Positions 16,901 through 63,134 of a stretch of DNA of 64,000 bases are shown one piece after another (the first letter of the stretch is position 1; every line of letters begins with the position of its first letter). This DNA is from Macrostomum hystrix. Taxonomy: Eukaryota; Animalia; Platyhelminthes. A model generated the notes under the pieces. The model was given only the letters and a program-made list of their open reading frames with translations, ran no database searches and was not told the origin of the DNA. Made by a program: the position numbers and the translations under genes. Where the stretch lies: contig CATNEN010000028.1 in the NCBI GenBank assembly GCA_950097015.1, positions 62,001 to 126,000 of the forward strand, in the 5' to 3' direction.

Positions 16901-19900
16901 TGCACCTGGCGGCCAGAACCGACGGTGGCGAGCGCTGCGCCGAGATGCTGTTGAAGAGCGGCGCCAATGTCAACAAAGCAAATCGGCTGGGCCAGACACC
17001 GCTGCACACGGCGGCCAAGGGGGGCAATGTTGACATGCTGATGGCGCTGCTTGCCGAGTCCGGCGACCCAACTCGCGTCTGTCAGCAGGTGAGGCCTCCA
17101 AGATATCCCATTCGCTCAGTTTATGTGTTATGGGAGCTTTTAGCGGTTAGTGGTTTGAGTTCTGACTTTTGAACGACAGGTCGGGAGTTTGAATCTCAGC
17201 GCAAGGGAAGCGATTTGTGTCCCTGAGCATGTGTCCCTGTCCTTAACCCATTAAGCATTAGCTGGGGGATAAATATGGGTGGGTGTGGCGGGCCCATCAT
17301 TTCACAGACTGAACAGCTGTTACACAGCCTTGGGAGCGCTGAGCAATAGCTGCGCTTGTACCACCACTGGCTATACATCTGGCCTAACTGGGCTTAATTT
17401 CTATTGTCTGGTGACAGCGGTCTAACGCGTGTGCTGCGTGATCACGGAGCTCGATTCCGCGGTGAGGCCACATTAATTTGGGGCGCAGCCGCGGAGAGAA
17501 GGCTTGGGGGCTTGCCGTACAATTTACGCCCTCGTTTAAATGTCATTCCCATCCGTTTGAATGGTATGAAACGCAGGAATCCATCCTTTTATTCCCGCAG
17601 GGCAATAGTCCTTTGCACCTTGCTGCCCGGCACTGTCGCTACGCCGTCGCCAAGGCCATAATTGAGCACGTCGAGTCCAACAAGTCGCATCATGACGCTG
17701 TGCACCTGGTGAACCTGGGCAACAAGGAGGGAGAAACTGCCCTGCATTACGCTGCCGAACTGGCCAAGGACAAGGCTGCAGGCGACTTTGACGACACGGA
17801 CCTTGTAAAGCTGCTGCTGCGTTACGAAGGCGACATCAGCGTACCGACTAAGTTTGTGAGTCCCAGAGGAAACAAACATCAAGGGAAGCAAAATGGAATG
17901 GGCACAGTATAAAAGTACATTTCATTCCGAAACCCACCGATTCGCTCAGACAATGGAGACGCCGTTGCACTACTGCGCTAGATCCGGAAATGAGGACATC
18001 CTGCTGGAGATTGTCAAATTTCTCGATCACCGAATTCAATTGGTGGTCAATAAGCAATCGTCGGTAAGTCCTTGTTCTAACCTAGCTAACATTTATCTAA
18101 TCTGCTTTCTATCAATACCAAAATTGGTCAAATCTATTCACTCTTCAGCTAACCTATTTATGTTTGACAGCGTTAATAAAATCTATCGTTTCGTTGATCT
18201 ATCATTTAATTCATCTGGTGGATTGATCTATTGTTGCATGAATTAATTCTCCAACCAACTGCACAGAACGGCTGGTCGCCGCTGCTCATAGCTAGCGACT
18301 GCGGACGCGAGGGCATTGTGCAGATCCTGCTCAAGAAGCACGCCAGAGTTGACGTGTTTGATACCGTGAGTTCATTTGCTTTGGTTTACAAAGTATAATA
18401 ACATCAGTAAAATGACTCAACGAAACACTGTTCTCAAACTTCCACAGAAAGGCTTCGCCGCCCTTCACTTGGCAGCCAAGAACAATCACGCCAATGTGGT
18501 CCGCAGTCTGCTGAGAATGAACGCATTCGTCAATGCCAAGAGCAAGGAGTGCTACACACCGCTGCACATGGCTGCCCAGGAGGGCCACAATGAGGTTGTG
18601 AAACTACTGCTCAAGCAAGATGGCGTCGAGGTTGATGCCAGAACTCTGGTGAGCTCGCTGGCTTAACGTCGTTCCAGCCACATTCCTTCTGTACATCTAT
18701 CCACATTCCCTCCATAAACCATCCACATTCCCTCCACAAACCATTCACATTCACTCCACAAATCTATTCACATTCCCTCCACAAATCTATTCACATTCCC
18801 TCCACAAATCTATTCACATTCCCTCCACAAACCATTCACATTCACTCCACAAATCTATTCACATTCCCTCCACAAATCTATTCACATTCACTCCACAAAT
18901 CTATTCACATTCCCTCCACAAATCTATTCACATTCACTCCACAAATCTATTCACATTCACTCCACAAATCTATTCACATTCCCTCCACAAATCTATTCAC
19001 ATTCACTCCACAAATCTATTCACATTCCCTCCACAAATCTATTCACATTCCCTCCACAAATCTATCCACATTCACTCCACAAATCTATTCACATTCACTC
19101 CACAAATCTATTCACATTCACTCCACAAACCATCCACATTCCCTCCACAAACCATCCACATTCCCTCCACAAATCTATCCACATTCACTCCACAAACCAT
19201 GCACATTCACTCCACAAACCATCCACATTCCCTCCACAAATCTATTCACATTCACTCCACAAACCATGCACATTCACTCCACAAATCTATCCACATTCAC
19301 TCCACAAATCTATTCACATTCACTCCACAAATCTATTCACATTCACTCCACAAATCTATTCACATTCCCTCCACAAATCTATTCACATTCCCTCCACAAA
19401 TCTATTCACATTCCCTCCACAAACCATTCACATTCACTCCACAAATCTATTCACATTCCCTCCACAAATCTATTCACATTCACTCCACAAATCTATTCAC
19501 ATTCCCTCCACAAATCTATTCACATTCACTCCACAAATCTATTCACATTCACTCCACAAATCTATTCACATTCCCTCCACAAATCTATTCACATTCACTC
19601 CACAAATCTATTCACATTCCCTCCACAAATCTATTCACATTCCCTCCACAAATCTATCCACATTCACTCCACAAATCTATTCACATTCACTCCACAAATC
19701 TATTCACATTCACTCCACAAACCATCCACATTCCCTCCACAAACCATCCACATTCACTCCACAAATCTATTCACATTCACTCCTCAAACCATGCACATTC
19801 ACCCCACAAATCTATTCACATTCCCTCCACAAACCATCCACATTCACTCCACAAATCTATTCACATTCACTCCACAAATCTATTCACATTCACTCCTCAA

Positions 19901-22900
19901 ACCATGCACATTCACCCCACAAATCTATTCACATTCACTCCACAAATCTATTCACATTCACTCCACAAACCATCCACATTCACTCCACAAATCTATTCAC
20001 ATTCCCTCCACAAATCTATTCACATTCACTCCTCAAACCATGCACATTCACCCCACAAATCTATTCACATTCCCTCCACAAACCATCCACATTCACTCCA
20101 CAAATCTATTCACATTCACTCCACAAACCATCCACATTCACTCCACAAATCTATTCACATTCACTCCACAAATCTATTCACATTCACTCCTCAAACCATG
20201 CACATTCACCCCACAAATCTATTCACATTCACTCCACAAATCTATTCACATTCACTCCACAAACCATCCACATTCACTCCACAAATCTATTCACATTCCC
20301 TCCACAAATCTATTCACATTCACTCCTCAAACCATGCACATTCACCCCACAAATCTATTCACATTCCCTCCACAAACCATCCACATTCCCTCCACAAACC
20401 ATCCACATTCACTCCACAAATCTATTCACATTCACTCCTCAAACCATGCACATTCACCCCACAAATCTATTCACATTCACTCCTCAAACCATGCACATTC
20501 ACCCCACAAATCTATTCACATTCACTCCACAAATCTATTCACATTCACTCCACAAACCATCCACATTCACTCCACAAATCTATTCACATTCCCTCCACAA
20601 ATCTATTCACATTCACTCCTCAAACCATGCACATTCACCCCACAAATCTATTCACATTCCCTCCACAAACCATCCACATTCCCTCCACAAACCATCCACA
20701 TTCACTCCACAAATCTATTCACATTCACTCCTCAAACCATGCACATTCACCCCACAAATCTATTCACATTCCCTCCACAAACCATCCACATTCCCTCCAC
20801 AAACCATCCACATTCACTCCACAAATCTATTCACATTCACTCCTCAAACCATGCACATTCACCCCACAAATCTATTCACATTCCCTCCACAAACCATCCA
20901 CATTCACTCCACAAATCTATTCACATTCACTCCACAAACCATCCACATTCACTCCACAAATCTATTCACATTCACTCCACAAATCTATTCACATTCACTC
21001 CACAAACCATCCACATTCACTCCACAAACCATCCACATTCACTCCACAAATCTATTCACATTCCCTCCACAAACTATCCACATTCACTCCACAAATCTAT
21101 TCACATTCCCTCCACAAACCATCCACATTCACTCCACAAATCTATTCACATTCACTCCACAAACCATCCACATTCACTCCTCAAACCATGCACATTCACC
21201 CCACAAATCTATTCACATTCCCTCCACAAACCATCCACATTCACTCCACAAATCTATTCACATTCACTCCTCAAACCATGCACATTCACTCCACAAATCT
21301 ATTCACATTCACTCCTCAAACCATGCACATTCGCTCCACAAACCATCCACATTCACTCCACAAACCATCCACATTCACTCCACAAACCATCCACATTCCC
21401 TCCACAAACCATCCACATTCACTCCACAAACCATCCACATTCCCTCCACAAATCTATCCACATTCCCTCCACAAACCATCCACATTCCCTCCACAAACCA
21501 TCCACATTCCCTCCACAAATCTATCCACATTCCCTCCACAAACCATCCACATTCACTCCACAAACCATCCACATTCACTCCACAAATCTATCCACATTCC
21601 CTCCACAAACCATCCACATTCCCTCCACAAACCATCCACATTCCCTCCACAAACCATCCACATTCACTCCACAAATCTATCCACATTCGCTCCACAAACC
21701 ATCCACATTCCCTCCACAAACCATCCACATTCCCTCCACAAACCATCCACATTCACTCCACAAATCTATCCACATTCCCTCCACAAACCATCCACATTCC
21801 CTCCACAAACCATCCACATTCACTCCACAAATCTATCCACATTCGCTCCACAAACCATCCACATTCCCTCCACAAACCATCCACATTCACTCCACAAACC
21901 ATCCACATTCACTCCACAAATCTATCCACATTCCCTCCACAAACCATCCACATTCGCTCCACAAACCATCCACATTCCCTCCACAAACCATCCACATTCA
22001 CTCCACAAACCATCCACATTCCCTCCACAAATATATCCACATTCCCTCCACAAACCATCCACATTCCCTCCACAAACCATCCACATTCACTCCACAAACC
22101 ATCCACATTCCCTCCACAAACCATCCACATTCCCTCCACAAACCATCCACATTCCCTCCACAAACCATCCACATTCACTCCACAAACCATTCACATTCCC
22201 TCCACAAACCATCCACATTCACTCCACAAATCTATTCACATTCACTCCACAAACCATCCACATTCACTCCTCAAACCATGCACATTCACCCCACAAATCT
22301 ATTCACATTCCCTCCACAAACCATCCACATTCACTCCACAAATCTATTCACATTCACTCCTCAAACCATGCACATTCACTCCACAAATCTATTCACATTC
22401 ACTCCACAAACCATCCACATTCACTCCACAAATCTATTCACATTTCCTCCACAAACTATCCACATTCACTCCACAAATCTATTCACATTCCCTCCACAAA
22501 CCATCCACATTCACTCCACAAATCTATTCACATTCACTCCACAAACCATCCACATTCACTCCTCAAACCATGCACATTCACCCCACAAATCTATTCACAT
22601 TCCCTCCACAAACCATCCACATTCACTCCACAAACCATCCACATTCACTCCTCAAACCATGCACATTCACCCCACAAATCTATTCACATTCCCTCCACAA
22701 ACCATCCACATTCACTCCACAAATCTATTCACATTCACTCCTCAAACCATGCACATTCACTCCTCAAACCATGCACATTCGCTCCACAAACCATCCACAT
22801 TCACTCCACAAACCATCCACATTCACTCCACAAACCATCCACATTCCCTCCACAAACCATCCACATTCACTCCACAAACCATCCACATTCCCTCCACAAA

Positions 22901-25900
22901 TCTATCCACATTCCCTCCACAAACCATCCACATTCCCTCCACAAACCATCCACATTCCCTCCACAAATCTATCCACATTCCCTCCACAAACCATCCACAT
23001 TCACTCCACAAACCATCCACATTCACTCCACAAATCTATCCACATTCCCTCCACAAACCATCCACATTCGCTCCACAAACCATCCACATTCCCTCCACAA
23101 ATCTATCCACATTCCCTCCACAAACCATCCACATTCACTCCACAAATCTATCCACATTCGCTCCACAAACCATCCACATTCCCTCCACAAACCATCCACA
23201 TTCCCTCCACAAATCTATCCACATTCCCTCCACAAACCATCCACATTCACTCCACAAACCATCCACATTCACTCCACAAATCTATCCACATTCCCTCCAC
23301 AAACCATCCACATTCGCTCCACAAACCATCCACATTCCCTCCACAAACCATCCACATTCACTCCACAAACCATCCACATTCCCTCCACAAATCTATCCAC
23401 ATTCCCTCCACAAACCATCCACATTCCCTCCACAAACCATCCACATTCCCTCCACAAATCTATCCACATTCCCTCCACAAACCATCCACATTCCCTCCAC
23501 AAACCATCCACATTCACTCCACAAACCATCCACATTCACTCCACAAACCATCCACATTCCCTCCATAAACCATCCACATTCCCTCCACAAACCATCCACA
23601 TTCACTCCACAAACCTATCCACATTCGCTCCACAAACCATCCACATTCACTCCACAAACCATCCACATTCCCTCCACAAACCATCCACATTCGCTCCACA
23701 AACCATCCACATTCACTCCACAAACCATCCACATTCGCTCCACAAACCATCCACATTCCCTCCACAAACCATCCACATTCACTCCACAAACCATCCACAT
23801 TCCCTCCACAAATCTATCCACATTCCCTCCACAAACCATCCACATTCCCTCCACAAACCATCCACATTCACTCCACAAACCATCCACATTCCCTCCACAA
23901 ACCATCCACATTCACTCCACAAACCATCCACATTCCCTCCACAAACCATCCACATTCCCTCCACAAACCATCAACATTCCCTCCACAAACCATCCACATT
24001 CACTCCACAAACCATCCACATTCACTCCACAAACCATCCACATTCACTCCACAAACCATCCACATTCACTCCACAAACCATCCACATTCACTCCACAAAC
24101 CATCCACATTCACTCCACAAATCTATCCACATTCACTCCACAAACCATCCACATTCCCTCCACAAACCATCCACATTCCCTCCACAAACCATCCACATTC
24201 CCTCCACAAATCTATCCACATTCACTCCACAAATCTATTCACATTCACTCCTCAAACCATGCACATTCACCCCACAAATCTATTCACATTCCCTCCACAA
24301 ACCATCCACATTCGCTCCACAAACCATCCACATTCCCTCCACAAACCATCCACATTCACTCCACAAACCATCCACATTCACTCCACAAACCATCCACATT
24401 CACTCCACAAACCATCCACATTCACTCCACAAATCTATCCACATTCACTCCACAAACTATCCACATTCCCTCCACAAATCTATCCACATTCACTCCACAA
24501 ATCTATCCACATTCCCTCCATAAACCATCCACATTCCCTCCACAAATCTATCCACATTCCCTCCACAAACCATCCACATTCACTCCACAAATCTATCCAC
24601 ATTACTTCTCCAGCACTCGAAGACGCCGCTGCACTTGGCTGCACAGCGAGGCCACAAGGAGGTTTGCGAGACTTTAGTTGACCACAATGCAGACACGAAA
24701 GCAACAGACAATGTGAGTTTTCAGACATTTTCATACGCTACAAGTTACCTAAATAGTTCTAGATTTCTTAAAGATTTCGTGAAGAGGCACTGCAAAATAG
24801 GATAAGAATTATATAATAATTATATATATGGAGAGGTTGTAGCCTAGTGGTTAAGGCGTCGGACTCACGACTTGAAGGTCGGGGGTTCGATTCCCGACTC
24901 CACTGGAACAATTTGCGTCCTTTAGCAAGACACTTAACTCTGCATTGCTTCAGTTCACCCAGCTGTTAAATGGGTACCAGCATCAGCTGGGATAATTGAA
25001 GGTGGGTGTGGCGTCCCCCCAGTCCGTGGACTGAACAGCTGTACGCAGCCTTCAGATGCGCCGCGCATTAGCTGCGGCTGTGCTGTCGGCTGCACATCTG
25101 ACCCAATTGGGGCAGGTGTAATCAATGTGTAGAACAAGATATCCTTATCCGAAAATTTTTTTGTTAAAATATTTTTACTGAAATCGAAAAATTACTAAAA
25201 ATAAGAAATATTAGACTTGAAAAAATATTTGTTTTAATCTTAATCAAATATGTCAAATGCTTGTTACACTGGAAGGGGGTGGGGCAGAGCACTTCAAAGC
25301 GTTTGCCTCTCGCGCCAAGGTCCCTGAGCTCGAATCCACGGCGAGGCCACATTCATTTGGGGCGCAGAGTTGGCTCGGGAGCTTGTTGCACAATCTTCGT
25401 CCATTGTGACCAACCCCGTCAAGGCTCACATGAAGATTGTACACTGCCTGACGATGAGATAGTCAGGGCTGTTGCACACACCTGTGTGAGTGTGTGCCTA
25501 TGGGCAAAATTGGCTCCTCTCAATTTCAGAACGGTCAAACACCGCTTCACCTGGCCGCCGAGCACGACAAGTCGCACGTGGTGAAAATGTTCCTGCGGAA
25601 GAAGGACATTGTCACCTTGTCTAGCGCTGTGAGAGCAAATCTTTTGACAATTTCCTTCTTTCACATTGTGCATTGTTACTGATATCAACAGACAATTTTG
25701 TACCACTATTTCAGGACGATGTACGTAGAGGCCAAGATGCATTGTCTTGTTGATTATATTTTTTGTTTGAGAATTATTTTCAAAAGGCATATATAGTCGT
25801 ACATAATGCACAGAATCAGAAATATAAAAAGCAAAAAGATGCACCTAGAAATAGTTTTTTCTTTTCTGTTAAAGAATTATTCTACACCTAGTTTAACGAT

Positions 25901-28900
25901 CGCAACTCAATTCTCTTTATCCAACAACTGAAGATATTATTGTTTTCAGTAGTAAATTAAGTATCATTTCTGTTACATTTTTTCTTATACAATCGCTGTA
26001 CACAAGATGAACTAGTTTATCGAAGAATTTCGGTCATTCTTCGCGGCTTGCAGAAAGGCATGACCTGCGCTCACATTGCGGCCAGCAAGGGCAGCATCTC
26101 CGTCATCAACGAGCTGCTCCGGTCGAATCGCAACCTGCTGTGCACAGCCAAGATTAAAATCAACGGCTGCACGGCGCTGCACCTGGCGGCTCAGGAAGGC
26201 CACGAGAAGGTCGTCCGCCTGCTGGTCGAAGCAGGAGCTTCACCGTCTGAGGAGAACTTGGAGGGCCTCACGCCGCTGCACTTGGCGGCGCAGAACGGAC
26301 ACTCCAAGGTGCGGGGCTGGCTGTGGGAGTAGAGTTTGGGTAGAGTGGGGAGTAGAGTTTAGGGTAGAGTGGGGAGTAAAGTTTGGGGTAGAGTGGGGGA
26401 GTAAAGTTTCGGGTAGAGTGGGGAGTAAAGTTTGGGGTAGAGTGGGGGAGTAGAGTTTAGGGTAGAGTGGGAGAGTAGAGTTTCGGGAAGAGTGGGGAGT
26501 AAAGTTTGGGGTAGAGTTAGGAACAAAAGTAAAGGGTAGGGGTAAGTTAAGGGGTTGTATGGGATTGAGTTAGGAGTAGAGTTAAGAGTAGGGTTACAGG
26601 TAGAGTGTGGGAGTAGTTTTACGGGTAGAGTGTGGGAGTAGAGTTACGGGTAGAGTGTGGGAGTAGAGTTTAGGGAAGCAGCTCGGGGTTTCATTTTTCC
26701 CAACGCCCGCCAAAATCTCGAGCAGGTGCTGCAGGCGCTGAAGGAGAAGGTCGACCTGCGCATTGCGTCGAAGAAGTCCGGCCTGACGCCGTTGCATATC
26801 GCCGCCTACGCCGGTCGGCAGGAGTTTGTGCAAGAGATACTCACGAAGGTTCCAGCGAACCTGGCCTCGCTGAAGCCAAAGGATCACAGCCTAATCAAGG
26901 AGATGGTGGCCGATGTGAGTAAAGACGGACTTTGAGACAGTTGAATTTGAGCTCAAGCTGCAACCATGTCACGATGCTTGACTCTGTTTTTTTTCAGTAC
27001 GGGTTCACCCCGCTGCACCTGGCCAGTCAGAGCGGCCACGAAAGCTTGGTTAGATACCTGCTCAACAGCACCGGAGTCAAGGTGGACTCAGCCACTATCA
27101 AGCATGTGAGCACTATTGAAATAATCAGACAATCTAAATGTTTGAGGCACTGTCAACTATTCTCACATTCCTATTTAAAGTTTGGTTCGTTGGGACCAAT
27201 ATTATTGTTTCCAAGCTGTCTCGGGCACACTCAAATCTTCAAAGGCACTCAATGCTCAATTGCGGCCCTCCCAACCAATCAGGGCATGATTCCGTTACAC
27301 CTGGCCGCCCAGAACGGCCAGACCAATGTGGCCAGCCTGCTGCTTAGCCGAGGCACCAATCAGGTTCGACTGGCTGACAGTCACGGCCGCACAGCGCTTC
27401 ATTGGGCTGCCAACAAAGGCCACTACGATATGGCGGCCTTGCTCGTGGGGCAGGGAGGTGATGTGAACGGACGAGACCAGGTGAGATCAGCGGCCTCACT
27501 CCCGTCCCTCCTTATTCCCATTGGCTGTCCCAATCTAAGCGCCCGCCTCACTCCCGTCCCTCCTTATTCCCTTTTGCTGTGCCAAACTAAGCGCCCGCCT
27601 CACTCCCGTCCCTCCTTATTCCCTTTTGCTGTGCCAAACTAAGCGCCCGCCTCACTCCCGTCCCTCCTTATTCCCTTTTGCTGTCCCAATCTAAGCGCCC
27701 GCCTCACTCCCGTCCCTCCTTATTCCCTTTTGCTGTGCCAAACTAAGCGCCCGCCTCACTCCCGTTCCTCCTTATTCCCATTGGCTGTCCTAATCTAAGC
27801 GCCCAATCCCCATTAAAAACGAGCGCCCACCCCTTCCCAATCCTGCCACCTTACTCCATTCTCTTACCTCTCCTCGTTACTATTGGCTGCCCGCTTTCAT
27901 TCGTCCAATCAACCGCAGAACAACTGGACGCCGTTGCACTACGCGGCCAAAACTGGGCATCTGCGAGTCGTTCAACTGCTGGTCGACTCCAAGGCAAACT
28001 GCGAAGCCGAGACCAAGGACAACAAACTGCCGGTCTCCTTCGCAGCCGAGAGCAACCACGTGGCTGTCGTCAGCTTCCTGTTGAAGGAGCGACACAGCAC
28101 CGCTCATCTGATGGAGGACTGGAAGTTCCTCTACGACATCATGCAGTGCAGCAAGAGCAGCGGCAACAAGACCCTGGAGGAGTTCATCCTGGCCTCTCCG
28201 GCGCCGGCCGAAACGGCTGCGAAGCTGTCCAGAAAATTTCGAATCCTCTCCGAACGTGAGAAGGAGCGCGCCAAGGAGCTGACGCTGATGGGCAAGCACT
28301 GCGAGCTGATGTGCGCCGAGCTGGTTGCAGTGGCCTCCACCGAGAATGGCAGCGAAGGCGCCGCCGGACTGCTGAAGGCAGTCGACAGTCGCGGAGTTCA
28401 GTTTCTGGACATTCTGCTCGAGACGGAGCAAAAGGAGGTGATCGCCCACCCGGCGGTGCAGAGATACCTCACCGACCTGTGGAAGGGCAACCTGGACTGG
28501 CCCACCTGGAAGTTTCTGCTTCTGTTCACCGTGTTTCTGCTGCTGCCGCCGGTGATGATGGTGTTCAGCTTGCCGTGGCGCAGGTATCGCTATCAGCGCA
28601 AACCGGTGATCAAGTTCATCGCCTACCTGATCGCACACTTTCACCTGATTGCCCTGTTCATGCTGGTTGCAATCGAACCAAACTGGTTAGGCTATCCCTA
28701 TTGGACTAGGCAGGACCTCATACCCACCTGGGTGGAATGCCTGCTGCTGCTGTGGCTCAGCGGTCAGCTGGTCTCCGAGCTTACCAATCCGGCCGACCGC
28801 TCCGGCCTTGGCATCTTCAAGGTAAGCTGAACTGTCTGTCCGTGTCTGCCCGTGTCCGTATCTTTCGCGTCCGTGTTAACCCGCACAGAAACACGCCGCA

Positions 28901-31900
28901 ATTCACCCGCAGGTGTTTGTCGTTGGCATCTCGGCTGTGGGCGTGGTCACTCACCTAGTGGCGTTCATCTTTCCCTACGGGTCGAATGAGCGCCTGGATG
29001 CCCTGTTCGCCCGCAACCAGCTCTTTGCCTTCGCCACTCTGCTCTGCTTCGTGGTGTTCCTGGAGTTCCTGACCTTTCATCACCAGTTCGGGCCCTGGTC
29101 CATCATCATCCGGGACATCATGCGCGACCTCATGCGCTTCCTGGTCATGCTGGCCCTGTTCGTCATGGGCTTCACGCTGATGCTGCGCGCCACCTACGTG
29201 GCAGTCTACGCGCCGCAGTCCAGCTCCGCGCTGACCTTAGTCAACAAGAATCTCATCGCCTCCTTCGAAGAGCTTTTCTTCGCCCTGTTCGGCTTCATAG
29301 AGCCAGACTTTCAGCCGAACCTTGCTCTGGCACCGTCCTGGACTGTCACTCTGGTGAAGATTCTATTTGGCGGCCATCTTGTTGTGTGTATCATTGTGCT
29401 CATCAATCTGCTCATCGCCATGATGACCGATACCTATCAGCGCATCCAGACCGAGTCGGACACCGAGTGGAAGTTCGGCCGAGCAAAACTGATTCGCAAC
29501 ATGAACAAGACCAGCCCGACGCCGACCCCGCTGATCCTGTTCACCCAGCTGTTCACCGTGTTGCGCAACGCCTCGCAGAAGGGTCGCGCTCAGCACCGAT
29601 TAGGTACGAAATCAAGTTAGATGCATTACTTTTTTTAGATTTACGAGCTACGTACTTAAAATGCTTGATGTGTGCTACTGCTTAGCGCATGATCAAGTCC
29701 CAAGTGAGCACATTGACCCCCTTGGCTTGTTTTGGTCTACCCTGAAGGCCAATGTCTCGTTCTCGCCTAGTTGTACAGGGAAAACGTATTACTTTGTTTT
29801 GATGTTTTCAGGTGTTGAACTGTAAATGCTCGTAGTCTGACAATGAAATCTTAGAAGATTTGGAAAACCGCGGGATTTCCTTTTGGCTGGAAGCCAAAAT
29901 TAAAGTCGTGATTTGTAAATGTATCGGAGACTCTGTTTAAGTATTTATATTTAAAATGTTATATACAAACCTGAAATATTTGAGGCTTTGACGAGGATGA
30001 AGACCCAGCCGTGGAGGACACAAGCAGGCCGGATGTGGCGCAATCGCAGGCTCTGGTCGCCGGAAGGAACCAACGCGAGTCTTCTTCCGGTTAGTGGCTT
30101 TTTGCAGAGTTCCTTTTAAAATCTTCTATACTGTGATAAAATAAGAAACAATTTTTAGTCTTTGCAGTAAGAGACCGTCTTTACGACAGTGATAAAAATG
30201 TAGCAATAATTTTACGCTGAAGTGCAAAAGTTCGAGTGCATTAGTAAAAGTGCAACATGAAAGTACACACAAAAAGTGCAAATCTGAAAATAATTATTCG
30301 CTTATTTTATAGCGTTCAACCATCTAATCGCGCCTCATTTCAGTCGCTCTTAGCATGAGCCAAGCTGCCACACGGCCGCCGATAATTACAACAGGTGATG
30401 AAAGATAGCAATCGGTATTACCGATAAGAGTCTGCATGTAAAAGCTAGCTTAAATTTCGGCGACTAACAATTAATCACTCAATCATTGCTTCGGCTGAGT
30501 TATCAGTTAAAACAACTAACTAACAAGGCACATTATTATAAAGATATTATTAACTAATTTCTGATATGACACTAACCATGCGTGAATGAATGCTTTCTGC
30601 TATGAAACTTGCAGAATAGCTACTTGTTGAAATACAAGTATTGTAGTGAAAACAATCCATTACGATATCACAGCAGTAAGAGCTTTTGTTTTGGGCCTCT
30701 GAATTGAAAGGACCAGGCACCAATACATTTAGCAATAGCGAGAAATAAGAAGGGGTTATGGGTGTGAAAATGGGTCAGAGGGTGAGAGATGAAAAGGAGG
30801 GGTGGAAAGCGAGCCAATCAGAGACGAGGCAGAGAAAATAGAAATTACGGTTAGCTTGAGCTCAGAAGTTAAAGAGGCAGAGAGGTAGAGAAGAGCTACA
30901 GAGTACACTTAAAAAGCGAGTGAAAGCAAAAAACACGTTAAGCAAATAACAAGTAGTATGAGTATGAGTAGTATGAGTGGTACCAATATTTTTATTTATT
31001 AGATCTTTTTGACCTGACGAGTGACGCGTCCATTTTATTGTTCAAAAGCAGAATTTTGAACGTATATTTATAATATACATTGAACTGTTTAACATGTATT
31101 CACCGTATCAGAAGCATCGTATTACTGACTAATCACATCCTCGCCTAACTTTCAGAGTTCATTTTCGACGATGGCGGAACAAGACCGCTGTCTCAGAGTC
31201 AGGGTACATCACGGAAAAATTTTCGCTTTTTGCCATTTACTAGGCAGTTTAGAAAATACTTGCCGAATTAGACCGCACACTAGTCAACATAATGCAATTT
31301 TTGAACAAAAACAAATCACCCAAATTTCACAAAGCTACTAATTATTGCACGACCATGACCTGCAGTTTTTAGGAACAGTGGTATGAGGTGGTGTGAGAAA
31401 AGGACCTGTGACTTAAAGGACCTGTGGAAAAGGGACCATAGACTTAAAGGACCTGTGGAAAAGGGACAATAGACTTAAAGGACCTGTGGAAAAGGGACCA
31501 TAGACTTAAAGGAACTGTGGAAAAGGGACCATAGACTTAAAGGAACTGTGGAAAAGGGATCATAGACTTAAAGGAACTGTGGAAAAGGGATCATAGACTT
31601 AAAGGAACTGTGGAAAAGGGACCATAGACTTAAAGGACCTGTGGAAAAGGGACCATAGACTTAAAGGAACTGTGGAAAAGGGACCATAGACTTAAAGGAC
31701 CTGTGGAAAAGGGATCATAGACTTATAGGACCTTGTGGAAAAGGTACCATAGACTTAAAGGACCTGTGGAAAAGGGACCATAGACTTAAAGGAACTGTGG
31801 AAAAGGGACCATAGACTTAAAGGACCTGTGGAAAAGGGACCATAGACTTAAAGGAACTGTGGAAAAGGGACCATAGACTTAAAGGAACTGTGGAAAAGGG

Positions 31901-37900: not shown

Positions 37901-40900
37901 TCCTCTTGTGGATCAATCGATGTCGCTTCTTCGATTAGCAGATTTGGCACCATCTGAAATTAAAAATTGCAGTTAGGGAGAGTTGAATATTAAAGATTAG
38001 GGACAACGCTGCGCGCTCAAAACTCTCATCAAGCGGCCTGAGTTCGAATCCGCAAATGGATTCACGTTGATTTAGGGTCGCAGCCACGTGGACAAAGCTT
38101 GGGGCTTTTTGCGAACTTAAGTCACAGAAATACCATCTGATCTTTGCAGTTAATCACTAGGATAGTTTTGTTGAAATCACGGTGAACTTGTTGCCAAGTT
38201 GTTCTATATATTTCTATGTGACTTCTAAGCAATTTTTAGATACGCTACGATATAAAATCACGCATACTATACGAGTATACACAAAGAGGATTGACTTCCT
38301 AAGACACTGGATTCTGAATTCTGTGTACAGAGAGAGTGTACACAGCCTGACGAGGTGAAAGCCAGGGCAGATGTACACAACTTCCAGATGCCGCAATAAT
38401 GCAGAATTCAATAAGGCCAGCAAGGCAGCAACATTTCCTTTCGCAATTAGCGGCAGAAGAAGCAGTCGATGGCCATGTTTGTACTGCTAGCAATTATTGC
38501 CAAGTATATTTGATGAGACTGCGGCAATAGCTGATAAAAGGACAGCCACGTCTTTCAGAAGACTTCCCAACATCCGTGGAACCAGCGCAAAACGATTTTT
38601 TTCTTGAAATCTTAACCCACGCTGGTCCCGGAGACGGCATAGCAACCAGTTCCCGGTCTCAGGGGGTGGGGGCAGGTGTCAGGAAGCAACGCCGAGGAAA
38701 ATGGCGCCGGGAAAAATTCCAACCCTCATTTAGCTCTTCTGATCCCCTCAGTCGCTCTCACTCTCATCCCTAAGTCCCATTATTCCCATTTGCCTTGAAA
38801 TTGAAATAATGGTTTAAAAGGATAATACCTTCTAAAAAGTATTGTCATCAAGTGTCAGGCAGTTTTGGGATAGGGAGAGAGAAAGACAGGCAGATGTGAA
38901 CTTTCGCAAAAGCAAAGTGCCGTACAATTCAAGTCAAGTTTCTTCTTCTAAAAGTTCGGGAAAAATACCTTAAGCACTCAGAGAATGATAAAAAAGGACT
39001 CAATTGGAGTGATGGAACCAGTGACAGATGTCAGATGAAACAGAGTGACAGATGCCAGAACAGAGTGACAGATATCAGACGAAACAGAGTGACAGATACC
39101 AGACGAAACAGAGTGACAGATGTCAGACGAAACAGAGTGACAGATGTCAGACGAAACAGAGTCACAGATGTCAGAACAGAGTGACAGATATCAGAACAAA
39201 CAGAGTGACAGATGCCAGACGAAACAGAGTGACAGATATCAGACGAAACAGAGTGACAGATGTCAGACGAAACAGAGTGACAGATGTCAGAACAGAGTGA
39301 CAGATATCAGACGAAACAGAGTGACAGATGTCAGACGAAACAGAGTGACAGATGTCAGATGAAACAGAGTGACAGATGTCAGACGAAACAGAGTGACAGA
39401 TGTCAGACGAAACAGAGTGACAGATGTCAGATGAAACAGAGTGACAGATGTCAGAACAGAGTGACAGATATCAGACGAAACAGAGTGACAGATGTCAGAC
39501 GAAACAGAGTGACAGATGTCAGATGAAACAGAGTGACAGATGTCAGACGAAACAGAGTGACAGATGTCAGACGGAACAGAGTGACAGATGTCAGACGAAA
39601 CAGAGTGACAGATGTCAGACGGAACAGAGTGACAGATGTCAGAACAGAGTGACAGATGTCAGAACAGAGTGACAGATGTCAGAAAAGAGTGACAGATGTC
39701 AGAACAGAGTGACAGATGTCAGAACAGAGTGACAGATGTCAGAAAAGAGTGAAAGATGTCAGAAAAGAGTGACAGACGTCATGCTTACCCCGCCGGTTTC
39801 ATCATCTTCATCAGCCGCCAGAGCAGCCGCCTCTTCTTCGGCAAGTCTGTCAAAAAAAATTTTGATTAAAAAAACATTTTGTAGAAGCAGCTGGGGCATT
39901 GTAAGAAACTGTAGAGTTTCTTATTCATTCTTTGTTAGTACTCGATGTAAACAAAGGTAAAATAGCTTTTTACATAGATTCTCAGGTAACATGCAAGGTT
40001 TGCACTTCAATAGAGTCTTTGATAAATCCACTGTTAGTCGATCAATAAAATTATCCAGAATTTAATCACTTTGCATAATCAATTATTAGCTGTCGCAACT
40101 GTGTTTTATAAATTAATTAGTATGAAAAAATAATGATGCTTGTGAGCAGTCGACAATACATCATCGACTGAGCCAGTCTACCCCAACACATGAGGGTTCT
40201 TAGCAGAGAATAAAACACACATCTAGCTGAGTTCTGACTTGGCCACAAGCAGCAATTTCAACAGCAACTCATGGAGTCCAATGCGGCCCCCTAAAGCCCA
40301 GATTGGTTAAAGCAAACAGAATTGCACAGCGCTAGTGAGTAGTGTTTTGGCGGGTCCACTCAACTAAGAGTGATAGCATCAAATGTAAGAACATTCGCTA
40401 GACATGGTAGACCAGCAGAGAGAGTCAAAGAGAGGAAAATATGGTTGCTATGCAAACCGATGAGACCTATTCTCTGCGGCTAAGCTGAAGAAAATAAAAC
40501 ACAATACTCAGCGTATTTTTGCCTATTTGTCTAATTTCGCAGAAATTATTTTTTAACTTTCAAAATTGGAAATTTTTAACTGATTATTTTTGTGATTGTT
40601 AACTAAAATAGATGCACAGGACAATCAGAAAAATCGTAATTAGAGTATTAATCTGGTGAAAATTTGGAATTAGGAATCATTTAGTCTGGCCGTTTGGTTC
40701 CGGTTAATCAGGTATAAAATCAATTAGAAATGTATAAACATTTTTAGGAGACCTGGTTTTGCTCCAGTCTTACACTTCTTTTGAAATGTTCTCTTCCTGA
40801 ATCGAAGGGTTCTTCTCTGTTGCCATGGCAACAACGCTTTGGTGTTGGCTCTCATCCTGGGCTGTGGATTCTGAGCCCTGAGCCCTTTTTGTCTCTTTGG

Positions 40901-52452: not shown

Positions 52453-54601
52453 TCAATAGTGCAGAGTGTGCGAAGCGAACTGCTGCCGGTTGGCCAGCAC
52501 TCTGCCGCACATGTTGCACTGAAAGGGCTCGTTCAGATTGTGCAGGCCCATGTGCAGGCAGTACATCACCTGATCCACAAAGCCAATGAGGCAGTGTGGG
52601 CACACGTGGGGAAAAACTCCGCTTTGGCCAACGGCGCCACTTTCGCTGCAATTGTCGTCGGCATTGAAACGGGGTGACTTCGGCTGCGCTAGCTGCACCT
52701 GCGACTGCTGCGGTGACGTCGGCGTCAAGGAGTCGACTGTGGCAGACGTTGTTATTGTCGCGGCTGAAGTGGCCGCGCCAGCGGGTGCGCTCTTACACTT
52801 TGGCGCCAGAGTCGACGAGGTCTTCAGACTTGCACACTTGTCGGCGATGGATGCTGAAGCCTGCGATGTTGGCGGCGGTGGCGGCGGCGGTGGAGGCGGC
52901 AGGATGGGAGGTTGCTGATGCATGAGCGGAGAAGCCAGGTGTACGAGACTCTGGAGATAGTCCGTGTAAGCCGCCAACCCCGGCCTCAGCAATGGAGGCA
53001 ACTGAAATCCTTCAGGTAGCTGTTGCTGAGTCTGCTGCTGCTGCTGCTGATGATGATGATGCAGCGGAGGCTGCGGCAGACTCTGCTGGCATGCGGCAGC
53101 GTGGCCGAGCATGTGCACGGCCAACGACTCGTCGCTAGATAGTCGGTCACCGCAGAGGCGGCAGACGGAGCCCGATGCTGACACTGACTTGGCCTGCGCC
53201 TGGCCTCGGGCTCCACCACCTCCACCGCCGCTCATCAGATCATGGCCAGCGACGCTGCTGCTTCCTCCGACATCTGTTGAACAGGCGCCGTTGTTCCTCA
53301 CGCTGTCCATCATGTGCATGGCGAGCGCGTCCCGATTCGCAAATGTCATGCGGCACGACTGGCAGCTGAAGCAGCCGCTGGCCGCTGCTGCTGCCGCCGC
53401 AGCCACAGCTGCCGCCGCCGAGCTGGCTGACGTTGAGGATGAAGTCGTAGTGACAGACATTGTCGACGTTGACGAACTGGCCGCAGATGCGGCCGCGGCT
53501 GCCGCTGCCGCAGCTGCAGCGGCCACGGCCGCGGCTGCCACAGTGGACACGGCTGGAGCCTGGCTGTGAGGGTACTTGATCGACTGAGCGAACAGCTGAT
53601 GATGCTGGGCCTGCTGCTGATAGTGAGGCGCTGCTGAGGAAGCTCCGTGGGCCCGCTTCCTGCCGCGCATGCCGCTGCCGCCGACACCGCCGCCGTTCGA
53701 CGAAGAATTCAGTGGATTCGGCGGTGTCGAAGACCGACCTCCGTGTGTCTCCGCACTTTCGCTGCCGCCGCCGCCTCCGCCACCGCCGACTGTCCGCTTG
53801 ATTAGATCCACTGGTCCGTTGTTGGCCTGCAGTTAATTAATTGGATGTTGTCATTGTTCTAAGACTATACCCTTCAAGGCGGGGGAGGATTCTCCAGACT
53901 GCAAAATTCTGGGAGTAAGTCGCTTTTAACAAACAAAACCGAGAGATCTTGAAGGATTCTGTCGCCTGAATGGAGTGTGGAGTTGGACCCCCGCATCCTC
54001 CTGTTAAATATTCAACGCGGGGACTTGAATGCGACTCCAATTAAACCGGGGCGGGGGGTGTGGCACCAGCGTGAGCAAACAATTGGGGTGGGTGGCTGCT
54101 AGTGGGTTTGTCCTGAACCTTTCCTTTTCGGCTTTTCCACGCCGTGCGACTTCACGGCTAGCTTCTCGCCTCCGTGTCCCGCTACACAAAACTCTCTGTG
54201 GGCAACCACCCGCTGGCCTGCTATGCTCAACCAGCTCAGAACCAGCTTTACTCGTTCTCTTTTTCCGCTTCATAGGTTTCATACTGCCAATTAGCCTAGG
54301 CGTAACTCATTGATTTACTCTTCGGGAGAACAAAATATGTCACATATGTAGATTGGCGCTTTCCCGAATCTACGGAACGTCTATTCATTCATACAACGTA
54401 CAATCTACTCACTAATCTATGGACAATCTAGTCAATAGTCTATGGAAAAATCTATTGAGTAGTCTATAGACGATGTATTATTTACCTTCGTTCCGTCTTT
54501 TTAGCCTTTCTTACCTCGCAATCTTCAGCGCATCGGTCTTGTCCACAGGCGAACTGGGTCTTAGCTGCCGCTGCTTCAATGCTGACGCTGGCCTGTGTCA
54601 T
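52453..54601 (-). CDS. Ikaros/Hunchback-family C2H2 zinc-finger protein, about 486 aa, 2 exons (54601-54515, 53826-52453)
   Basis: C-terminus CPHCLIGFVDQVMYCLHMGLH...PFQCNMCGRVLANRQQFASHTLH is the Ikaros/Hb dimerization finger pair. Two isolated central fingers (CQSC..H, CRLC..HMLGH). Acceptor ctgcag at 53827. The upstream ATG exon ends at GAG|GTAAGA in phase 0 and is less certain. Confidence 0.85.
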
Positions 54602-56944: not shown

Positions 56945-59900
56945 GTTTGTAGCCTAGTAGAAGGTTGTAGCCTAGTAGAAGGTTGTAGCCTAGTAGAAGG
57001 TTGTAGCCTAGTAGAAGGTTGTAGCCTAGTAGAAGGTTGTAGCCTAGTAGAAGGTTGTAGCCTAGTAGAAGGTTGTAGCCTAGTAGAAGGTTGTAGCCTA
57101 GTAGAAGGTTGTAACCTAGTAGAAGGTTGTAGCCTAGTAGAAGGTTGTAGCCTAGTAGAATGTTGTAGCCTAGTAGAAGGTTGTAGCCTAGTAGAAGGTT
57201 GTAGCCTAGTAGAATGTTGTAGCCTAGTAGAAGGTTTTAGCCTAGTAGAATGTTGTAGCCTAGTAGAAGGTTGTAGCCTAGTAGAATGTTGTAGCCTAGT
57301 AGAAGGTTGTAGCCTAGTAGAAGGTTGTAACCTAGTAGAAGGTTGTAGCCTAGTAGAATGTTGTAGCCTAGTAGAAGGTTGTAGCCTAGTAGAAGGTTGT
57401 AGCCTAGTAGAAGGTTGTAGCCTAGTAGAAGGTTGTAGCCTAGTAGAAGGTTGTAGCCTAGTAGAAGGTTGTAGCCTAGTAGAATGTTGTAGCCTAGTAG
57501 AAGGTTGTAGCCTAGTAGAAGGTTGTAGCCTAGTAGAAGGTTGTAGCCTAGTAGAAGGTTGTAGCCTAGTAGAAGGTTGTAGCCTAGTAGAATGTTGTAG
57601 CCTAGTAGAAGGTTGTAGCCTAGTAGAAGGTTGTAGCCTAGTAGAAGGTTGTAGCCTAGTAGAAGGTTGTAGCCTAGTAGAAGGTTGTAGCCTAGTAGAA
57701 GGTTGTAGCCTAGTAGAAGGTTGTAGCCTAGTAGAAGGTTGTAGCCTAGTAGAAGGTTGTAGCCTAGTAGAAGGTTGTAGCCTAGTAGAAGGTTGTAGCC
57801 TAGTAGAAGGTTGTAGCCTAGTAGAAGGTTGTAGCCTAGTAGAAGGTTGTAGCCTAGTAGAAGGTTGTAGCCTAGTAGAAGGTTGTAGCCTAGTAGAAGA
57901 TTGTAGCCTAGTAGAAGGTTGTAGCCTAGTAGAAGGTTGTAGCCTAGTAGAAGGTTGTAGCCTAGTAGAAGGTTGTAGCCTAGTAGAAGGTTGTAGCCTA
58001 GTAGAAGATTGTAGCCTAGTAGAAGGTTGTAGCCTAGTAGAAGGTTGTAGCCTAGTAGAAGGTTGTAGCCTAGTAGAAGGTTGTAGCCTAGTAGAAGATT
58101 GTAGCCTAGTAGAAGGTTGTAGCCTAGTAGAAGGTTGTAGCCTAGTAGAAGGTTGTAGCCTAGTAGAAGGTTGTAGCCTAGTAGAAGGTTGTAGCCTAGT
58201 AGAAGGTTGTAGCCTAGTAGAAGGTTGTAGCCTAGTAGAATGTTGTAGCCTAGTAGAAGGTTGTAGCCTAGTAGAAGGTTGTAGCCTAGTAGAATGTTGT
58301 AGCCTAGTAGAAGGTTGTAGCCTAGTAGAATGTTGTAGCCTAGTAGAAGGTTGTAGCCTAGTAGAATGTTGTAGCCTAGTAGAAGGTTGTAGCCTAGTAG
58401 AAGGTTGTAGCCTAGTAGAAGGTTGTAACCTAGTAGAAGGTTGTAGCCTAGTAGAAGGTTGTAGCCTAGTAGAAGGTTGTAGCCTAGTAGAAGGTTGTAG
58501 CCTAGTAGAAGGTTGTAGCCTAGTAGAAGGTTGTAGCCTAGTAGAAGGTTGTAGCCTAGTAGAAGGTTGTAGCCTAGTAGAATGTTGTAGCCTAGTAGAA
58601 GGTTGTAGCCTAGTAGAAGGTTGTAGCCTAGTAGAAGGTTGTAGCCTAGTAGAAGGTTGTAGCCTAGTAGAAGGTTGTAGCCTAGTAGAAGGTTGTAGCC
58701 TAGTAGAAGGTTGTAGCCTAGTAGAAGGTTGTAGCCTAGTAGAAGGTTGTAGCCTAGTAGAAGGTTGTAGCCTAGTAGAAGGTTGTAGCCTAGTAGAAGG
58801 TTGTAGCCTAGTAGAAGGTTGTAGCCTAGTAGAAGGTTGTAGCCTAGTAGAAGGTTGTAGCCTAGTAGAAGGTTGTAGCCTAGTAGAAGGTTGTAGCCTA
58901 GTAGAAGGTTGTAGCCTAGTAGAAGGTTGTAGCCTAGTAGAAGGTTGTAGCCTAGTAGAAGGTTGTAGCCTAGTAGAAGGTTGTAGCCTAGTAGAAGGTT
59001 GTAGCCTAGTAGAAGGTTGTAGCCTAGTAGAAGGTTGTAGCCTAGTAGAATGTTGTAGCCTAGTAGAAGGTTGTAGCCTAGTAGAAGGTTGTAGCCTAGT
59101 AGAAGATTGTAGCCTAGTAGAAGGTTGTAGCCTAGTAGAAGGTTGTAGCCTAGTAGAAGGTTGTAGCCTAGTAGAAGGTTGTAGCCTAGTAGAAGGTTGT
59201 AGCCTAGTAGAAGGTTGTAGCCTAGTAGAAGGTTGTAGCCTAGTAGAATGTTGTAGCCTAGTAGAAGGTTGTAGCCTAGTAGAAGGTTGTAGCCTAGTAG
59301 AATGTTGTAGCCTAGTAGAAGGTTGTAGCCTAGTAGAATGTTGTAGCCTAGTAGAAGGTTGTAGCCTAGTAGAAGGTTGTAGCCTAGTAGAAGGTTGTAG
59401 CCTAGTAGAAGGTTGTAGCCTAGTAGAAGGTTGTAACCTAGTAGAAGGTTGTAGCCTAGTAGAAGGTTGTAGCCTAGTAGAATGTTGTAGCCTAGTAGAA
59501 TGTTGTAGCCTAGTAGAAGGTTGTAGCCTAGTAGAAGGTTGTAGCCTAGTAGAAGGTTGTAGCCTAGTAGAAGGTTGTAGCCTAGTAGAATGTTGTAGCC
59601 TAGTAGAAGGTTGTAGCCTAGTAGAAGGTTGTAGCCTAGTAGAAGGTTGTAGCCTAGTAGAAGGTTGTAGCCTAGTAGAAGGTTGTAGCCTAGTAGAAGG
59701 TTGTAGCCTAGTAGAAGGTTGTAGCCTAGTAGAAGGTTGTAGCCTAGTAGAATGTTGTAGCCTAGTAGAAGGTTGTAGCCTAGTAGAAGGTTGTAGCCTA
59801 GTAGAAGATTGTAGCCTAGTAGAAGGTTGTAGCCTAGTAGAAGGTTGTAGCCTAGTAGAAGGTTGTAGCCTAGTAGAAGGTTGTAGCCTAGTAGAAGGTT

Positions 59901-60590
59901 GTAGCCTAGTAGAAGATTGTAGCCTAGTAGAAGGTTGTAGCCTAGTAGAAGGTTGTAGCCTAGTAGAAGGTTGTAGCCTAGTAGAAGGTTGTAGCCTAGT
60001 AGAAGATTGTAGCCTAGTAGAAGGTTGTAGCCTAGTAGAAGGTTGTAGCCTAGTAGAAGGTTGTAGCCTAGTAGAAGGTTGTAGCCTAGTAGAAGGTTGT
60101 AGCCTAGTAGAAGGTTGTAGCCTAGTAGAAGGTTGTAGCCTAGTAGAATGTTGTAGCCTAGTAGAAGGTTGTAGCCTAGTAGAAGGTTGTAGCCTAGTAG
60201 AATGTTGTAGCCTAGTAGAATGTTGTAGCCTAGTAGAATGTTGTAGCCTAGTAGAATGTTGTAGCCTAGTAGAATGTTGTAGCCTAGTAGAAGGTTGTAG
60301 CCTAGTAGAATGTTGTAGCCTAGTAGAAGGTTGTAGCCTAGTAGAAGGTTGTAGCCTAGTAGAATGTTGTAGCCTAGTAGAAGGTTGTAGCCTAGTAGAA
60401 GGTTGTAGCCTAGTAGAATGTTGTAGCCTAGTAGAATGTTGTAGCCTAGTAGAATGTTGTAGCCTAGTAGAATGTTGTAGCCTAGTAGAATGTTGTAGCC
60501 TAGTAGAAGGTTGTAGCCTAGTAGAATGTTGTAGCCTAGTAGAATGTTGTAGCCTAGTAGAATGTTGTAGCCTAGTAGAAGGTTGTAGCC
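56945..60590. repeat. 18-bp satellite, about 3.6 kb (about 200 copies)
   Basis: Unit aggttgtagcctagtaga with tgtt/gatt variants. The 1122-aa (GYNLLL)n ORF is spurious. Confidence 0.97.
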
Positions 60591-60664
60591 GGGGAAAAAA
60601 GGCATAGGGGCTTATCGCGCAGTGACCTCCATGACTTCCAACCCCCCAAGGTACAACGGATTCT

Positions 60665-60904
60665 AGAAAGCTTCATTCATGAATAATTGATCTTAATTTT
60701 ATTTTCGCATATTTATCATGAAGCACAATAGCTTGTCAAAAGCTCAAGTGATTTTGTCATCACTTTCTAATCAAGCGTACTGCAAGTGTATTACGAGAAT
60801 AAAGTAAATCAGGCAAATGTTGTCTGATTGGTTGCTATAATTGTGCTTCATGATAAGTAAACGAAAATAAAATAAGGATCAATTATTCATGAATGAAGCT
60901 TTCT
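60665..60904. mobile_element. About 240-bp fold-back/MITE-like element with about 65-bp imperfect TIRs
   Basis: agaaagcttcattcatgaataattgatc...tcatgaagcacaat versus attgtgcttcatga...gatcaattattcatgaatgaagctttct. No clear TSD. Confidence 0.7.
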
Positions 60905-60942
60905 GAAATTCGTTGAAGCAACATGTTTTGCCAGATATACTC

Positions 60943-61584
60943 AGTAGTAGGGGTTAGTTCAACTCTGACGCAGGAAATTCCATGGAAATTCCATATGTGT
61001 TGCAGGCGATAGTATTGAGCCTTGATTTTGAAAACTGTGGAATAATGCATGCATTCAGGCACAGCGTGATTTGTATTGCATGACCACAATTATTATGTGA
61101 AGTGTTGTATTCTTTTTACTGTAACACTGCAATTAATTGTATCGAGTAGTAGTGTTAGAGTCTGCTGGCTCACATTCACTCAATTCTCATTCTGGGGCTC
61201 TAATGATGTGCCTATGCAAGTAGGGGTTAGTTCAATTCTGACGCACCTGCACTGGGTGGAATGGCTGCACGTGAATTAGCGTAGATAGACGGGAGTGGTG
61301 TTGAATGGAATTGGCTGCCCCAGTGGACAGGCCAATCACACTAGGTGTTCCTTAGCGAGCTCCAGGTTTACGGGGGCCTACTCGATACAATTAATTGCAG
61401 TGTTACAGTAAAAAGAATACAACACTTCACATAATAATTGTGGTCATGCAATACAAATCACGCTGTGCCTGAATGCATGCATTATTCCACAGTTTTCAAA
61501 ATCAAGGCTCAATACTATCGCCTGCAACACATATGGAATTTCCATGGAATTTCCTGCGTCAGAGTTGAACTAACCCCTACTACT
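60943..61584. mobile_element. 642-bp non-autonomous Polinton/Maverick-like element
   Basis: 207-bp TIRs at 60943-61149 and 61378-61584 that read as exact reverse complements. Termini AGTAGT...ACTACT. 6-bp TSD ATACTC at 60937-60942 and 61585-61590. Confidence 0.8.
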
Positions 61585-61729
61585 ATACTCGTATTAAAAT
61601 AGCAGCATTGGATCTGCTTTCAGTAAAGTTATCAACATTTTCATGTGAAAAAGAAAAAATATCCTGTCCTTCAATAAATTTCCCAAGAAACAAAGTGTTC
61701 TCGTCCTTCTTCTTCTATTGGTCCTTGAT

Positions 61730-62002: not shown

Positions 62003-63134
62003 TCAGTGGTGCGTGACCGTCAAGGTATGCGACTCGAAGCCAGGCTCCGGCTCCGGTCGAAACGGCGCCTCGACGAAGACCCGACCGTCGCTGCGCAGTC
62101 GGGCCGACATGCGGGTCAGGTCGAGGCCGGCTGGCAGGTCGAATTCGTCGCGAAACTCCCTGAAGGAGGTCTTGCCGGCACTGCGAGCCTGCCGCTGAGC
62201 GTGGATGACCAGGCGACTGCCCGAGTCCGTTGTGGCCACGCGCAGGTCATTGGCGGTGAATTCACCGCGACCTAGGTCCAGCTCCAGCTGGTAGATGTTG
62301 ATTCGCTTGAGTGCCGAGTGCTGATTCTGATGCAGCTGCTGCTGTTGCTGCTGAGAAGCTGATTGCTGCGTCTGTCGCTGAGCGCCACCACCTGAAGCCG
62401 GAACTGCCGAGCTGCTCTTGCCGGTCGGTAGCAGCGGCGCGGACAGCATCAGCTGGCCGTTCACCACCACGGAGCGCAGCTGGCTGGTGTCCACGCCGTC
62501 AGGCAGTGCGAACTGTTCGTCGAACGAGACGCTCGTCCGTTTCCCGGCACCTGCGTCTGATAGGCTAGCCCGGCCGGACACCTGGCAATGAAACACGTGA
62601 CACGTCTTTTTGGCCAGAGCTTTGAATGCTGTAAATGGAGTCTTCACAGTAAGAGACCGTCTTTACGCCTGTTGCCTTGTAAGGCTAGGAGGTTGTAGCA
62701 TTGCGGTTAGAGCGTCAAACTTACGACTCGAAGGTGGGGGTTCGATTCCCGACTCCACTGGAAAAAATAGTGCCTAATTAATGTCACCCAGCAGTAGCGA
62801 AAAAAGATAAACAGTAGCGAATTTATTCTGCTTTCTAATTAGAAAATCTGTTGAACGAAACGAAAAACGGTTTTTGCGGGGAGTTGTCTCTCGAAATCTC
62901 ACGAATTCCGCTCACCTGAACTGTCCTGTCGCCAATAAGGCTGATGCGCAGGTCGTCAGGCCCGTAGCCGTGGACGTCGAAAACTGCCCGGTAGAGCAGT
63001 GACCCGTCTGGCTGCTTCTCTACGTGGCCCCGGACCGCTCCGGCGCCGCTGTTGACTTGCGGATGCGACGTCGCACTGCCGTCCGCGGTTCGTTTACCGT
63101 CGCCTTCGAGGCGTCGAAAGAAATCGTTGATCAT
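62003..63134 (-). CDS. Small heat-shock protein with two alpha-crystallin domains (p40/Tsp36-like); exons 63134-62916 and 62581-62003
   Basis: Domain 1: YRAVFDVHGYGPDDLRISL...FDEQFALPDGVDTSQLRSVVVNGQLMLSAP. Domain 2: YQLELDLG..FTANDLRV...FREFRDEFDLPAGLDLTRMSARLRSDGRVFVEAP. Phase-0 GT-AG intron. The N-terminus could extend into an upstream exon. Confidence 0.85.
62624..62667 (-). other. Near full-length spliced-leader-like copy inside the sHSP intron
   Basis: CGTAAAGACGGTCTCTTACTGTGAAGACTCCATTTACAGCATT versus recalled SL CCGTAAAGACGGTCTCTTACTGCGAAGACTCAATTTATTGCATG. Confidence 0.72.
62688..62762 (+). mobile_element. SINE family 1 tRNA-like head only
   Basis: ggaggttgtagcattgcggttagagcgtc...gaaggtgggggttcgattcccgactccactgg matches 24830-24907; loop CTTACGA. 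Confidence 0.75.

Follow-up and report, generated by a model that had tools for sequence, protein, structure and literature searches.

The 64-kb window analyzed here (64,000 nucleotides of a Macrostomum hystrix contig) contains a 642-bp unit of animal DNA at positions 60943-61584, which reads as a single unit with inverted ends. The question raised by this locus is to which kind of mobile element, if any, the unit belongs, and whether it moved in its present miniature form. In an initial annotation it had been described as a non-autonomous Polinton (Maverick)-like parasite that was recently mobilized in trans. We closely examined its structure, its termini, its interior and its surroundings, and weighed this description against other readings.

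Perfect inverted ends and an exact target-site duplication

An inverted-repeat scan of the whole window returned one perfect inverted pair, formed by the two arms of the element. The arms are 207 nt long each and 100% complementary, and are separated by a spacer of 228 nt. They account for 414 of the 642 bp (64.5%) and are AT rich, with a GC content of 0.38 versus 0.51 in the interior (Table 1). The hexamer ATACTC lies directly outside both ends. Upon comparison of flank lengths of k = 4 to 10, the flanks were identical at k = 6 only, and identical 6-mers at the element's spacing occurred at 13 of 30,004 positions in the part of the window outside tandem arrays, i.e., with a frequency of about 4e-4. 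The inverted arms, the 6-bp target-site duplication (TSD), the length of the interior and the share of the arms were thus all confirmed as initially annotated. Furthermore, the suggestion that single strands would form a panhandle was borne out by structure prediction, in which the single-stranded element folds into a panhandle of 207 bp (-284 kcal/mol, z = -30) because the arms are perfect.

Table 1. Features of the element and its borders (window coordinates)
Feature	Position	Strand	Basis
Left TSD copy, ATACTC	60937..60942	.	Flank comparison and chance count
Left terminal inverted repeat (TIR), 207 nt, GC 0.38	60943..61149	+	Inverted-repeat comparison
End motif (AGT)2	60943..60948	+	Sequence; Maverick motif per PMC8097293
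Terminal 27-mer, left arm	60946..60972	+	Three occurrences in element, 0 chance matches expected
Two tandem copies of 11-nt unit, left arm, adjoining 27-mer	60973..60994	+	
Interior, 228 nt, non-coding, GC 0.51	61150..61377	.	
Internal third 27-mer copy, 26/27 match	61219..61245	+ (same orientation as left end)	
Right TIR, 207 nt, exact reverse complement of left TIR	61378..61584	-	
Two 11-nt tandem units, right arm	61533..61554	-	
Terminal 27-mer, right arm	61555..61581	-	
End motif (ACT)2	61579..61584	+	Sequence
Right TSD copy, ATACTC	61585..61590	.	Flank comparison and chance count

The base preceding the left ATACTC (T, position 60936) is the same as the final base of the element (T, position 61584), so a 7-bp TSD with the ends shifted by one base is formally possible. 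The foldback element Galileo, the TSD of which is 7 bp long, fits the element only with the ends offset in this way. The symmetric 6-bp TSD is the simpler reading.

A structure of this kind could also be non-mobile, either as a local inverted duplication formed by replication template switching or as an artefact of assembly. Chimeric long reads can yield perfect palindrome-like structures, and tandem arrays, which make up 36% of the window, render assembly difficult. Against such an origin stand the unique 228-nt spacer, the sharp ends and the exact 6-bp flank duplication with its low chance frequency; moreover, the element lies in unique sequence, at a distance of 352 bp from the nearest array. 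Based on the exact duplication and the sharp ends, an assembly artefact was rejected, and we regard a non-mobile origin in general as barely credible.

Termini and duplication match those of Mavericks/Polintons

The termini of the element read AGTAGT at the left and ACTACT at the right end, i.e., (AGT)2...(ACT)2, as had been noted before. Mavericks of vertebrates carry a 6-bp TSD, TIRs of 46 to 1,447 bp and the end motif 5'-(AGT)2//(ACT)2-3', which is their commonest, with (AG)3//(CT)3 as an alternative (PMC8097293). The authors of that study linked this motif to jumping-back, a step of replication by protein priming. Further publications list 6-bp TSDs together with long TIRs as Maverick/Polinton features (PMC8969392) and support the 6-bp TSD (PMC10045372). 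The hallmarks on which the initial annotation relied, including slide-back priming at AGTAGT-type ends, are therefore backed by the literature (PMC8097293, PMC8969392). In the element, the TSD is 6 bp long (ATACTC, seen at one copy and with a 1-bp ambiguity), the TIR length of 207 nt lies within the published range, and the AG...CT ends begin with the short repeat (AGT)2 and close with (ACT)2. This motif was described from vertebrates, and we assume that it is also of diagnostic value in a flatworm-grade host.

Two other groups of DNA transposons agree with the element in the length of the TSD, which is 6 bp in IS3EU/GingerRoot elements and 6 or 7 bp in Dada elements. IS3EU/GingerRoot elements end in TA..TA, occasionally in TG..CA (PMC10045372). 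The ends of the element are AG..CT, and no shift of its boundaries yields TA ends plus a direct duplication, which led to rejection of this group. Dada elements insert inside multicopy small RNA genes (tRNA, snRNA). In searches with Rfam and ARAGORN, the insertion site and its surroundings were free of RNA genes, and Dada was rejected as well.

Since the signature matches that of Mavericks and each of these two groups fails in one feature, the best reading is a miniature element of the Maverick/Polinton type. Judged by the signature of one copy, the element is, on balance, probably a miniature, non-coding, non-autonomous derivative of a virus-like transposon of this type. It also shows the structural features of a MITE, being short and non-coding and having TIRs and a TSD. 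Repbase sorts non-autonomous DNA transposons by termini, TSD and TIRs, with the formal rule that the TSD length is the same and that terminal positions 1 to 11 align with at most 1 mismatch to a classified member (PMC4455052). Sorting on these three features would place the element among the Polintons.

Alternatively, the element may be a foldback-type MITE derived from a DDE transposon of the cut-and-paste class, the superfamily of which would be either known, the ends being atypical for it, or as yet undescribed. Its TSD would be 6 or 7 bp long, and its AGTAGT ends would have arisen by coincidence. The 6-bp TSDs of IS3EU/GingerRoot, the 6- to 7-bp TSDs of Dada and the possible offset-end reading with 7 bp are all consistent with this, as are long-armed foldback-like elements in the P superfamily (Galileo; PMC3573991). 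Furthermore, no Maverick gene lies nearby in the 64-kb window, and genomes of flatworm-grade animals are poorly catalogued. On the other hand, the element has neither the TA..TA nor the TG..CA ends of IS3EU/GingerRoot, the small-RNA-gene target of Dada is absent at the site, and a random end would equal the commonest six-letter Maverick motif in only about 1 of 4,096 cases. Taken together, we consider a foldback MITE of this kind unlikely, yet a serious contender.

A terminal 27-mer recurs in the interior

From the outside inward, each arm consists of (AGT)2, a 27-mer sharing the second AGT with this motif, and two 11-nt tandem units. A third copy of the 27-mer was found in the interior (Table 1). 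Its local alignment to the arm scored 49, well above chance (shuffle maximum, 25). This copy has only a single AGT, the outermost one being absent, and by its presence the stretch 61219-61584 itself has inverted ends of 27 nt. Apart from the 27-mer, local comparison of the interior with the arms revealed no relation between them.

The internal copy shows that the interior was rearranged, which is in line with an in-place remnant, i.e., a full-length Maverick/Polinton that inserted with a 6-bp TSD and later lost nearly all of its interior, with no movement of a miniature and no mobilization in trans. Such a loss would leave a signature identical to that of a miniature that moved as such, and the initial claim of movement in miniature form is therefore supported by the Maverick-type signature to the same degree as in-place loss is. 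In addition, 96% of vertebrate Maverick loci are degraded (PMC8097293), and a single copy was seen in the 64-kb window. However, both break points would have had to fall into narrow stretches, leaving the arms whole and 100% identical with 228 nt between them, and the interior has no coding remnant. We therefore judge an in-place remnant to be quite improbable.

Coding content, further copies and partner genes

Open reading frames (ORFs) of the element are at most 68 amino acids long and gave no Pfam match, in agreement with the initial description of the interior as non-coding. No noteworthy Rfam match was obtained in the element, and an ORF encoded by the arm had no relative in the protein collection, from which the host genome is evidently absent.

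The proposal of a Polinton derivative draws support from the signature. Mobilization in trans as one of a family was not matched by further copies or partner genes within the 64-kb window: a blastn search with a word size of 7 found no second copy, and in 69 ORFs outside repeats, each at least 90 amino acids long, Pfam recognized no domain of a capsid, protease, integrase, packaging ATPase or protein-primed polymerase. The only domains found in these 69 ORFs were ankyrin, Ion_trans, SPATA1_C, HSP20 and C2H2. The host flanks joined over one ATACTC, representing the empty site, had 0 matches in metagenome contigs. A plain pattern of the right flank also had 0 matches; the host locus is thus absent from these contigs, and the blank result for the empty site carries no weight. 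That the element was mobilized in trans, that this happened recently and that it belongs to a family of copies is what we infer.

Genomic surroundings

The gene closest to the element encodes a small heat-shock protein (HSP20/alpha-crystallin) on the minus strand (62003-63134), seemingly in two exons. Its stop codon is 412 bp away from the element, which may consequently be located within the 3' untranslated region or close to it. Two HSP20 stretches were recognized by Pfam in the ORF at 62003-62647, and the upstream ORF at 62835-63134 resembles alpha-crystallin by eye only, with an overlapping frame that gave no Pfam match. For the HSP20-like ORF, the protein collection yielded one relative, which comes from Macrostomum lignano and is 45% identical. 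The locus of that protein has no DNA in common with the window or the element, which shows that the host is another species. The window further harbors a TRP-like gene with ankyrin-repeat and ion-transport domains, which spreads over at least 16354-29620 of the plus strand, a SPATA1-like exon (Pfam SPATA1_C) and a C2H2 zinc-finger ORF of 452 amino acids on the minus strand (52453-53811), for which a word-based protein search returned no relative.

Minisatellite arrays account for the 36% of the window mentioned above. A 22-nt unit with a GC skew near -0.97 is repeated about 263 times at 18699-24603 (5.9 kb), within the ankyrin/ion-channel gene. At 56947-60590, about 202 copies of an 18-nt unit follow one another, with the end of this array 352 bp from the element. 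Beyond these two, about 20 further arrays were counted. Members of a dispersed repeat family, in both orientations and with 76 to 88% complementarity, were located at 13344-13469, 15973-16233, 17448-17532, 25296-25474 and 38325-38373. Two of the copies flank a 30-nt minisatellite at 14224-15921, and the family may represent a transposon carrying an internal array.

Upstream of the element, at a distance of 21 bp, lies an unrelated inverted-repeat unit (60654-60915) with arms of 76 nt that are 89% complementary and a spacer of 110 nt. It is probably an older MITE with ill-defined boundaries and duplication. A weak Rfam match to the plant microRNA family MIR821 on the minus strand (60640-60929; 51 bits versus a gathering score of 249) was taken as hairpin likeness only. 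Rfam also called a tRNA on the plus strand at 24833-24902 (33 bits versus a threshold of 29), whereas ARAGORN found no tRNA in the window; the sequence could be a repeat that derives from a tRNA, or a gene that has decayed.

Proposed mechanism and meaning

If the Maverick-type assignment is correct, the enzyme that inserted the element would have been an integrase of the retrovirus-like (rve) type, with target cuts staggered by 6 bp, and may have come from a full-length element at another place in the genome. The terminal trinucleotide repeat could serve the jumping-back step when the polymerase of the full-length element copies the miniature by protein priming. The long arms might allow a displaced single strand to close as a panhandle, and this pairing would at the same time maintain the identity of the arms. 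Within the arms, the part most likely recognized by proteins would be the 27-mer, of which each end has one copy and the interior another, together with the two 11-nt units that follow it. The evidence on age consists of the perfect arms and the perfect duplication. While the perfect arms fit the recent mobilization proposed at the outset, a protein-primed replicon may itself keep its arms identical, which leaves their perfection ambiguous as a measure of age.

Taken further, the element could function as a minimal replicon that is also a substrate for integration, belonging to a virus-like Maverick-type element of a flatworm-grade animal. All cis requirements for copying and insertion would then reside within the 207-nt arm, perhaps even within the 27-mer with its three copies. 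We put this forward as a tentative and rather doubtful proposal. If it held, Mavericks would have parasites of their own that are the size of MITEs and resemble defective interfering genomes, and the extra copy of the end in the interior could be a trace of the process by which miniatures form or become still shorter.

The more general assignment to Mavericks, if true, would confine the cis-acting part to 207 bases or fewer at each end, and a copy this perfect suggests that the machinery was present in the host lineage not long ago. The known workings of Mavericks are unchanged by the element. A single copy classed by its signature is a lead and not yet a result; for annotation of a poorly catalogued animal genome, it provides a clean seed for one repeat family.

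Comparison with known systems

Families of non-autonomous Polintons are already catalogued in Repbase, e.g., under the name Polinton-1N1_DR from zebrafish (PMC9341505). As regards the open literature, the remark that such tiny derivatives are seldom described is justified; miniature Polinton derivatives are hardly discussed there, and only Repbase names were found. The remark does not extend to the Repbase catalogue. Non-autonomous Polintons are thus known, and the element is a clean example from an under-sampled host. Its likeness to Polinton-1N1_DR, known here by name only, is one of concept, namely, that of a non-coding derivative classed by termini, TSD and TIRs.

Non-autonomous IS3EU/GingerRoot elements share the 6-bp TSD with the element, and their integrase-related DDE enzyme is a likeness to the Maverick type, while their TA..TA or occasional TG..CA ends differ from AG..CT (PMC10045372). 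With classical MITEs and foldback elements, such as Galileo of the P superfamily, the element has in common its small size, the lack of coding sequence, long arms as the bulk of its length and the presence of a TSD; the lengths of their TSDs and their end letters differ from those of the element.

The autonomous Mavericks/Polintons of animals share with it the 6-bp TSD, the range of TIR lengths and an identical end motif (PMC8097293). This description comes from vertebrates, to which the host of the element does not belong, and gives a size of 13 to 25 kb with genes for the autonomous elements, compared to 642 bp without genes and with 64.5% of the length in the arms for the unit described here.
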